Assembly (NCBI RefSeq): GCF_006345805.1
Contig: NC_043008.1
Location: 9,238,001-9,302,000, forward strand
From: Octopus sinensis
Lineage: Eukaryota
Direction of reading: 5' to 3'
Length of the DNA: 64,000 nt
A model generated the notes under the pieces. That model was not told the origin of the DNA. It saw only the letters and a list, made by a program, of their open reading frames with translations, and did not search any database. Shown here in pieces: positions 48,201-61,994 of this stretch. How positions within the stretch are numbered: the stretch's first letter is position 1; each line of letters begins with the position of its first letter. A program made the translations under genes and the position numbers.

Positions 48201-51200
48201 GAAAAAAGAAACAGAGAAAGAGAGAAAATAGAGAGGAAGAGAAAAAGAGAGAAAGTGAAAGAAAGAAGGCGAAGAAGAAAGAGAAAATGAAAGAAAGAGA
48301 AAGAGTGAGGATGAAAAGAGGGAAAGAGACAAACAGAAAGAGAAAAGAAGAGAGAGAGAGAGAGAGAGAGAGAGAAGAATCAGCTCAAGAACATAACTGG
48401 TATTTCCTTTATCAATTCTCAAAGGATGAAAGGTAAAGGTGACCCCAGCAAGATTTGAACCCAGAACAATGAGAACCTGAACAAATAACACAAATATTCA
48501 ATACTCCAATGAGTTTGGCAATTGGCCAAAATATTTGAACGATTAACCTAATTTTTTCCCCATTCCCTGGGTTTATCCTTTATCAAAACAATACAAACAG
48601 TAATAAAGATAATAGAATCCAATCGTGTCTGGGCCAGCGTTACCTTCCGGACCTCGAAAAGTTGAGAAGTTGCAGCAAAACCATATTTATATAGGAAAAA
48701 AAAAGCTTCTCCTCTATAGTAAAATTTTGTTGTATACCCAATTGAATATTAGCCATTTTCTATAGCGATGTTTGATCAAAAATTTTAATAATTTTATATT
48801 TTGTTGAATCTACCTGTATTTACCTGTATCTATCTACCTGCAATTAGAGTCACTTTGTGACAAAAATTATAGTATAGAATTGGTTGAGAACATTTCATTA
48901 AATTATCTTCCAAAAATCACATTAATATATCTTTATATATAAAAGTGAAGTTGTGTGTCTGTCTCCTACGATTTAGATTCCTAACTACTCCCACATTTTG
49001 CGGTGCAGTTTAACCAAAACTGGGTATCTTATAGTCGTGATTCATATCGAGCCCTTCTGGGTATTAGCACACGCCTACGATGAGTCAACGATTTAAAAAA
49101 AAATTTACCATAATTTTTTTCCATTTTTAATGCATTTTTGCTATTATATAAGGGAAGTAACTCTCTAAAAATGCTTATATAGTTATTTCCCTTACAAACC
49201 CGAGCAACGCCGGGCGATACTGCTAGTTGATAAATAAAAAAGTTATAGTTGTTTAATGAAACCAGACTAAATTTATGATTATGTTAGAAATTACTTGAAA
49301 CACACAAGGGGTGTATTTTGGTCAGAAATATAGTAACGAAAGGGTTAAAAAAAAGTTTTCAACCAATGGAAGAAGAAAATACTGTCACATACCTTTAACT
49401 TCTTACTATCATCGTGACCACGGTAACCTCCACTCCTACCACCACCACCACCACTTTGATGCAAACCTTCACAAACCGAGAAACGAATCCGAAACGGACA
49501 GCTATAGCTACGGTGGAGAGGTTTTGCTTTCTTCGCCGCCCGTTTGTGATGTGGTGCCAACCTCCTTTCATAATTCGGTAACACCATCGTTTAAGAAGAT
49601 AAACAACAGGTGTTCTGACTTGACTGCTCAATCAAGAGAGTCTCTTCTAACGATTTTCTTTACATTCACAACAACAATAACAACAACAACAGCAGCAAAG
49701 GTAATTATATCAGTATTTCACCTTCACCTGCCACCACTGACAGTCCATGGTCAATTAAAACATGGATTTGCTTTTTACTGTCAGTAAAGACACCTCTCTC
49801 TCTCTCTCCTCTCTCTCTCTCAGACACACACACACACTCTCACACACACAAACACATACACACACACACACACACTGAGTTTTCCTATCTTAAAGCAGAA
49901 AGCTTGGTCGAGTGTAACTTGAGCATTCCAACAAAGTTATGAATGATGAGGAGAGCTTCTACAATCCAGGAACTCTCTCACTTTCTCTCTCCCTCCCTCT
50001 CTCTCTCTCTCTCTCTCATTTGCTTCATTCATTTTTACATCCGGTTTTCCATTAGGCCTTTATAATATATATATATATATATATATATATATATACATAC
50101 GTACATATATATATATATTATATATATACATACATACATATATATATATATATATATATGTGTGTGTGTGTGTGGTGTGTGTGTGTGTATATATATGTAT
50201 ATATATATATCACGTGATCACATGACTGACCAGTCCATCAGATGTAGTTACACATCGCTGGTCACAATGCGTTCGCATTGTTTTAGCCTTCGAATGACGC
50301 CATATATATATATATATATATATATATATACACACACATATATATACACACATATATATACATATATGCATAGATATATATGTATATTTATGCATATCAT
50401 CATTATTATCATCATCATTTAACATCCATATATATATATATATGTACATGTATATATATACATAATACATATATATGTGCATACACACACACACACATAT
50501 ATAATTTGTATATTTGTGTGTGAATACATACGTATGAAAGCATATTTGCATGAGAGAGAGGGAGGGAGAGAGATGGGGAGAGAAAGAGAGAGAGAGAGAG
50601 AGAGGGAGGGAGACAGATTTGCCTGACTCCTTTGTTTCTCCTTCTCAATACTTCTAGAAACCAAACAATGCATAGATTCATATTCATATATTACAGGTGT
50701 GGATGGGTGTGGATGTGGGTGTTTTTACATGTAGTCTACATATTTATATAAGTGTGTAGAGAGAGATGCACATGCACATTGTATGCAAAAGTGTGTGTGT
50801 GTGTGTGTGTACATATATATATATATATATATATATATATATATGTATCTGTATTTTTTCAACATTTACAAATAACATGGAAAAAATAAATAGTTACCAC
50901 GGTAGCAAAAATTTACATAAGTACCAAGTATATAACAGCCTACTTATAAAGGTAGAAATTCCAGGTTTTGGTCAGAAGTATAAAGATTTGAATAACACCT
51001 GCGTTTATATATCTATATATCAGGTCATCCTATAAGTTCTGTCCAATTTTACCTTTTTTTTTTAAATTGAATGAAATTTAATAGCATTTTAGAATGTCTA
51101 ATGGAATTTTAAATTATTTTTATGCATCTGTACATTTAAACTAATTAAATATCATTTTACAGAATAATAGAATTAAAATTTTTCCAACATGGAAGTATCC

Positions 51201-61994: not shown

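Follow-up and report, generated by a model that had tools for sequence, protein, structure and literature searches.

A candidate alternative first exon in intron 1 of the Octopus sinensis NPHP4 gene, probably a chance open frame

The NPHP4 gene and its proposed first exons

The 64,000-nucleotide (nt) stretch of Octopus sinensis DNA analysed here (contig NC_043008.1, positions 9,238,001 to 9,302,000 of assembly GCF_006345805.1; below, the window) carries on its minus strand the 5' part of the NPHP4 (nephrocystin-4) gene. A tblastn search with a human NPHP4 sequence that, in this as in all other comparisons, did not come from a database record and is a single orthologue gave 10 collinear minus-strand matches running from 42.5 kb to 0.1 kb, the best of them with an E-value of 4e-7. 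This collinear exon similarity assigns the locus to NPHP4. The original prediction gave the gene two alternative and paralogous first coding exons, exon 1a (61869-61994) and exon 1b (49393-49587), both on the minus strand and each to be spliced to the same exon 2. Our analysis suggests that 1b is probably a chance exon-like open frame in unique intronic DNA rather than an ancient copy of exon 1.

Exon 1a, the canonical first coding exon, has 42 codons, starts with ATG and ends in phase 0 at the donor ACG/GTAAGA (the slash marks the splice junction). The exon 1a start codon is flanked by A at -3 and G at +4 and preceded, 9 nt upstream, by a TGA in the same frame. Residues 12-40 aligned with human NPHP4 residues 12-40 without gaps and in register (score 37; shuffling gave P=0.005), which places exon 1a at the canonical N-terminus, and exon 1a and its human counterpart each have 42 residues counted from Met. 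Judged from the sequence, exon 1a is the genuine and the sole demonstrable first coding exon of NPHP4 here. A palindromic E-box, CACGTG, lies at 62002-62007, 8 nt 5' of the exon 1a ATG, and shares bases with that TGA and also with an X-box half-site, GTGACC.

Exon 2 (42416-42559, minus strand), the common acceptor exon, has 48 codons, a strong acceptor (ttttccag/GTTTCC) and a phase-0 start. Residues 58-93 of the human sequence were aligned to it by tblastn, and FNE is the ending in both. No Pfam family was found for the NPHP4 N-terminal composites, no relative or model of the NPHP4 N-terminal region was found in the PDB, and the Rfam scan of the window gave no matches. In exon 3 (VVYMHTT, 40824-40822, minus strand) the first in-frame Met 3' of exon 1 is found; as a conjecture, an intron-1 transcript without a coding first exon could give an N-terminally shortened NPHP4 from this Met.

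The candidate exon 1b, which is unverified, is a 65-codon ATG-to-donor open frame in NPHP4 intron 1, ending in phase 0. The positions predicted for 1a, 1b and the X-box within 1b are all correct, and the ATG starts, the phase-0 donors and the fit to exon 2 were confirmed. In structure 1b is like an alternative first exon, with an ATG frame that is open to a consensus donor and in phase with exon 2. The in-frame TAA reported just before its ATG is also present, 6 nt 5' of the ATG (49591-49593), and since this stop lies just upstream, 1b is ruled out as a coding internal exon. The 1b peptide contains the basic patch (10 residues) and the Gly-rich tail described for it, and the Gly run was read from the sequence as encoded by a (GGT)5 microsatellite (49444-49458, minus strand). 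The observed/expected ratio of CpG is 1.07 in 1b and 1.15 in exon 1a, and 0-0.56 in five of eight internal exons. About 12 patches as CpG-dense as 1b are present in the window, and most of those inspected are repeats. The 1b stretch itself is single-copy within the window and not repeat-derived. An origin of 1b as part of a transposon was considered and dropped, since no second copy is present in the window and only a 17-nt string like a mariner end and a repeat tail adjoin it.

Comparison of exon 1b with exon 1a and with chance

The full peptide pattern P..R...S.PF.I.F...[DE]G, which had been ascribed to both exons and to the human N-terminus, is present in none of the three. What the two exons do have in common is the shorter S.PF.I.F...[DE]G, 13 residues at 49465-49503 in 1b and at 61875-61913 in 1a, both on the minus strand; the human sequence shares only S..F.......[DE]G with it (DG in human). 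The motif was defined from the 1a and 1b sequences themselves. An ungapped match of 14 residues between 1a and 1b has a BLOSUM62 score of 33, with P of 0.002-0.003 against shuffled peptides; over all the per-peptide comparisons P ranges from 0.002 to 0.009. Among 343 real stop-free chunks of 65 residues from the window, three score at least 33 against 1a, one of them being 1b itself. Of the control candidates, one on the opposite strand (56687-56749) reaches 32 against 1a and two more reach 29. These values of real control candidates mean that scores nearly as high arise in real sequence without homology.

The absence of nucleotide similarity between the two exons was borne out. Outside the motif no similarity was found in peptide or DNA, and within the 14 matched codons 20 of 42 nucleotides are identical. 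The shared Ser is encoded by TCT in one exon and by AGC in the other, codons of two unrelated serine families. Between the motif and the splice junction there are 2 residues in 1a and 24 in 1b, the 24 including the microsatellite-encoded Gly run, and the exons have 42 and 65 codons, so that the similar length and position looked for in paralogous exons were not found. With the human N-terminus 1b could be aligned only out of register (score 26, P=0.04) and not at the motif, and it does not fit the family N-terminal pattern; the comparison is weak, as it uses one orthologue whose sequence did not come from a database. Structure prediction of both isoforms, which had been proposed as a check, was run with AlphaFold2 without alignment on composites of 1a and 1b, and the predicted local distance difference test (pLDDT) values of 46 and 34 were too poor for the first strands to be compared.

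Taken from the sequence comparisons, the similarity of 1a and 1b appears nominal at best and about at chance level, and paralogy of the two is not supported. The old duplication proposed for them gained no support, with a likeness limited to 13-14 residues, a score near that of the control, and a 1b peptide that is off the human N-terminus at the very motif.

The open frame of 1b lies in a region (49311-49787) where four of six frames are open, one of them holding an opposite-strand open reading frame (ORF) of 158 amino acids (aa). Trinucleotide repeats, (GGT)n and (GTT)n, lie in and beside 1b. Repeats such as (GGT)5 are without stop codons in all six frames, and the 1b frame owes much of its length, and its openness in part, to them. 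Among simulated introns of matching size and composition, 16-42% hold an ATG-to-phase-0-donor frame of at least 65 codons. Real intron 1 has such frames of at least 20 codons at six distinct donors of at least 2 bits, and two frames with a donor of at least 4 bits. The codon-usage log-odds are alike in the three frames of 1b (0.045, -0.008 and 0.038), and 11% of intronic open frames score as high; the model, for which exons of the window itself served as training set, did not distinguish known exons from intronic frames and is given little weight.

Protein searches with 1b joined to exon 2 and with a 289-aa spliced N-terminal composite gave no NPHP4 relatives, and even the exon 2 part had none. 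The 1b peptide had 0 matches in an exhaustive HMMER search of 1.84 billion representative proteins, a metagenome contig scan with the same peptide gave no relative, and Pfam gave no match for the 1b ORF. Exact look-ups in public assemblies found neither the 80-aa 1b ORF, nor the 158-aa opposite-strand ORF, nor the ORF of a mariner element nearby on record. A literature search found no paper on alternative first exons or promoters of NPHP4, on an N-terminal isoform switch, or on NPHP4 in octopus.

X-box-like sites and repeats around exon 1b

The X-box is a motif expected at the promoters of cilium genes. The X-box predicted inside 1b, GTGACCACGGTAAC (49414-49427, plus strand), was confirmed as a match to GTNRCC(N0-3)RGYAAC with 6+2+6 spacing. 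With this spacing 0.17 strict matches are expected in the window by dinucleotide shuffles, against the 1 found, and at least one is present in 15 of 100 shuffles; when spacers of 0-3 are allowed, 0.475 are expected per window. The strict X-box count is unremarkable at window level. Allowing one mismatch gives 7 matches where 3.95 would be expected; as many are found in 15 of 100 shuffles.

The five loci within one mismatch all lie between 42485 and 50893. A cluster of five sites was considered and dropped, as exon 2 accounts for one and a repeat like a short interspersed nuclear element (SINE) for another, leaving the sites at 44965, 49414 and 50893 in unique intronic DNA, within 6 kb. The first, GTTGTCATAGCAAC (44965-44978, minus strand), is an exact fit to the worm consensus GTHNYYATRRNAAC. 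The last, GCTACCGTGGTAAC (50893-50906), has one mismatch and the same core, TACCGTGGT, as the site in 1b.

The X-box in 1b lies about 160-175 nt 3' of the proposed ATG, unlike the usual promoter arrangement. In worm, functional X-boxes are found about 100 bp upstream of the start codon (PMC551537), and in mouse testis RFX2 sites are very close to transcription starts (PMC4498915). Expression of Nphp4 is reduced in Rfx2 mutant mice, yet Nphp4 is apparently no direct RFX2 target in testis (PMC4498915). The site in 1b may have arisen by chance, may be an RFX element of the intron, or may belong to a second promoter.

On both sides 1b is bordered by repetitive DNA. A diverged tail of a repeat family of about 200 bp (49285-49349, plus strand) lies 44 nt beyond the 1b donor and matches 26077-26094, 29061-29086, 46988-47010, 7251-7272 and other places. 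The family is partly tandem, ends in gtaacgaaagggttaa, and lies at 7248-7364 (plus strand), 26314-26418 (minus strand), 28820-29329 and 46965-47010. Some of its copies carry a short ATG-to-GT frame with LSTPFQLLL that scores 25-29 against exon 1a purely by chance, which means that STPF-type matches arise readily in this window. Just 3' of 1b in the minus-strand sense, a dispersed repeat occupies 48899-49240, with copies at 38837-39244 (94% identity) and 6426-6978 (85-95%). On the 5' side of the 1b ATG, 49660-50900 is dominated by the microsatellites (GTT)n, (GA)n, (GT)n and (AT)n, and in this more than 1 kb of upstream DNA no promoter-like feature, TATA box or other, was seen.

In addition, a degenerate transposon of mariner/Mos1 type was identified in intron 1 (50960-52230, plus strand). 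One of its ORFs (51189-51500) encodes HTH_48 (E=2e-25) and another, in a separate frame (51620-52180), a partial DDE domain of Transposase_1 (E=1e-23). The 17-nt string TTTTGGTCAGAAGTATA at its 5' end (50966-50982) is repeated at 49316-49332, just past the 1b donor. Intron 1 also holds two copies of a GC- and CpG-rich repeat (53600-54330 and 59240-59700), whose open frames share peptide strings of 15 and 23 residues and gave no match in Pfam. A tRNA-derived SINE-like element with aggtgaccccagcaagatttgaacccagaac (48319-48572) has at least 12 diverged copies in the window and holds the one-mismatch X-box mentioned above. A tandem pair of a CpG-rich SINE-like element with gttctgagttcaaattccgccgaggtcgactttgcctttcat (about 62640-63060, minus strand) lies 650-1050 nt 5' of the start codon of exon 1a. 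It gives the window its highest CpG density, and the peak is for this reason not a promoter CpG island.

Explanations of exon 1b and known systems

The sequence features of 1b and their chance rates are those given above and below, and from them we infer that 1b is not used. The balance leans towards 1b not being an exon; of that part of the probability about two thirds would go to pure chance and about one third to a genuine RFX regulatory site around which the ORF is incidental. No 1b isoform would then be made and NPHP4 would be translated from the ATG at 61994. The X-box in 1b would be fortuitous, or else a real RFX site, serving as an intronic regulatory element that does not define an exon.

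Several observations weigh against a chance frame. The 1b donor, AAG/GTATGT, has 4.97 bits by a generic metazoan matrix, which ranks it in the top 6 of the intron's 1259 GTs and above the donors of exons 1a and 2. The start codon of 1b lies in a context of A at -3 and G at +4; only 56 of 413 intronic ATGs have R at -3 together with G at +4, and the phase is the right one of three for exon 2. In a six-frame translation of the whole window S.PF.I.F...[DE]G is present only in 1a and 1b, and in 400 third-order Markov runs only 1-1.5% of simulated introns yielded an ATG-to-phase-0-donor candidate scoring at least 33. The X-box is the hardest feature to dismiss. It is the only strict one in the 64-kb window, only about 5e-4 are expected in the 195 nt of 1b (a co-location noticed after the fact), and near exon 1a no X-box was found within one mismatch. 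The joint chance of donor, phase, start context and X-box would be very small if these were independent and chosen in advance. Moreover, the silence of the protein databases on 1b says little, because exon 2 is also without relatives there.

With such features an alternative-first-exon reading of 1b stays plausible, and counted with or without duplication a real exon has an appreciable share of the probability, though the smaller one; this share includes the improbable case in which 1b is real and also paralogous to 1a. If 1b is an exon in its own right, which we consider unlikely but well worth weighing, a second and possibly RFX-dependent promoter in intron 1 would start transcripts upstream of 49587. 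The donor at 49393 would join exon 2 to give NPHP4 with a different N-terminus of 65 residues, made up in part of the basic patch and a Gly-rich linker, and the likeness to the 1a motif may be coincidental. The strong donor, right phase and good start context would suit it, as would the upstream stop that excludes a coding internal exon, the strict X-box that exon 1a lacks, the CpG ratio like that of exon 1a and the uniqueness of the sequence. Against it, the X-box lies about 160-175 nt 3' of the ATG, the sites in mouse testis are near transcription starts, and Nphp4 is apparently no direct RFX2 target there (PMC4498915); the DNA upstream is microsatellite, several frames are open and the codon signal is not specific to one of them. 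The further step, that 1b is an ancient duplicate of exon 1a and that the isoforms swap the first strand of the N-terminal domain, seems improbable. The exclusive motif, the ATG start and phase-0 end of both exons and the rarity of such similarity in simulated introns speak for it, but the motif was derived from the very sequences compared, the control scores almost as high, and the match stops after 14 residues, with different Ser codons, 20 of 42 shared nucleotides and a different distance to exon 2. The human N-terminus and the structure models give it no help. Little credence can be given to the complete two-promoter proposal, in which the intronic promoter would be RFX-dependent through an X-box in its own first exon, itself an ancient duplicate of exon 1. 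If it were true, transcripts of ciliated cells would encode NPHP4 with the first N-terminal strand replaced and preceded by a basic, Gly-rich extension.

It is also unlikely, though it deserves consideration, that the patch is an RFX-bound cis-regulatory element (intronic enhancer) of NPHP4 with no coding exon and an incidental ORF. It has the only strict X-box of the window, two more near-consensus sites within 4.5 kb in unique intronic DNA (44965 and 50893), and no one-mismatch competitor near exon 1a. Yet at window level a single strict match, where 0.17-0.475 are expected, falls short of significance, 15 of 100 shuffles equal the one-mismatch count, and two of the five near-consensus loci fall in exon 2 and the SINE-like repeat. 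A very remote alternative is that 1b is an internal cassette, entered through a weak acceptor at about 49620-49630, in which the in-frame TAA would end translation and lower NPHP4 output as a "poison" exon. AGs behind a short pyrimidine run (ctctcttgattgagcag/tcaagtcag/) are indeed present 30-45 nt 5' of the 1b ATG, a reading frame continued from 1a would run into the TAA at 49591-49593, and the donor is strong, but the acceptor is poor and the idea is a conjecture from sequence alone. The reading as a chance open frame is the one we prefer.

The N-terminal region of NPHP4 contacts partner proteins in vertebrates. If 1b were real, a core protein of the transition zone would switch between N-terminal isoforms in connection with a cilium-specific promoter, which would bear on how the partner-contacting region can vary. 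The case would at the same time be one further example, in one lineage, of alternative first exons, which like duplicated first exons are already well known. If 1b is not real, it gives a caution that, in long repeat-rich introns, a start codon, an open frame, a good donor and a short matching motif may come together without significance.

Alternative first exons from alternative promoters are common in animal genes. Exon 1b resembles them as a second ATG-bearing exon within intron 1, with its own donor and in frame with exon 2, but is a prediction from sequence. Tandem exon duplication is exemplified by the variable first exons of protocadherin and UGT1A genes. Like these, 1a and 1b have phase-0 ends and a peptide motif in common, and a transcript would carry one or the other; the known cases, however, are similar along the whole exon and have similar lengths, whereas 1a and 1b match over 13-14 residues and have 42 and 65 codons. 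What 1b has in common with regulation by X-box and RFX (DAF-19) is a 14-bp 6+2+6 match to GTNRCC-NN-RGYAAC in a gene of the cilium transition zone, but the site in 1b is 12.5 kb inside the gene and 3' of the proposed ATG. Compared with fortuitous intronic ORFs and pseudo-exons, the donor, phase, start context and X-box of 1b coincide more neatly than is typical, while its place between repeat fragments and microsatellites, its several open frames, and its lack of codon bias and of any homologue are matched with that class.

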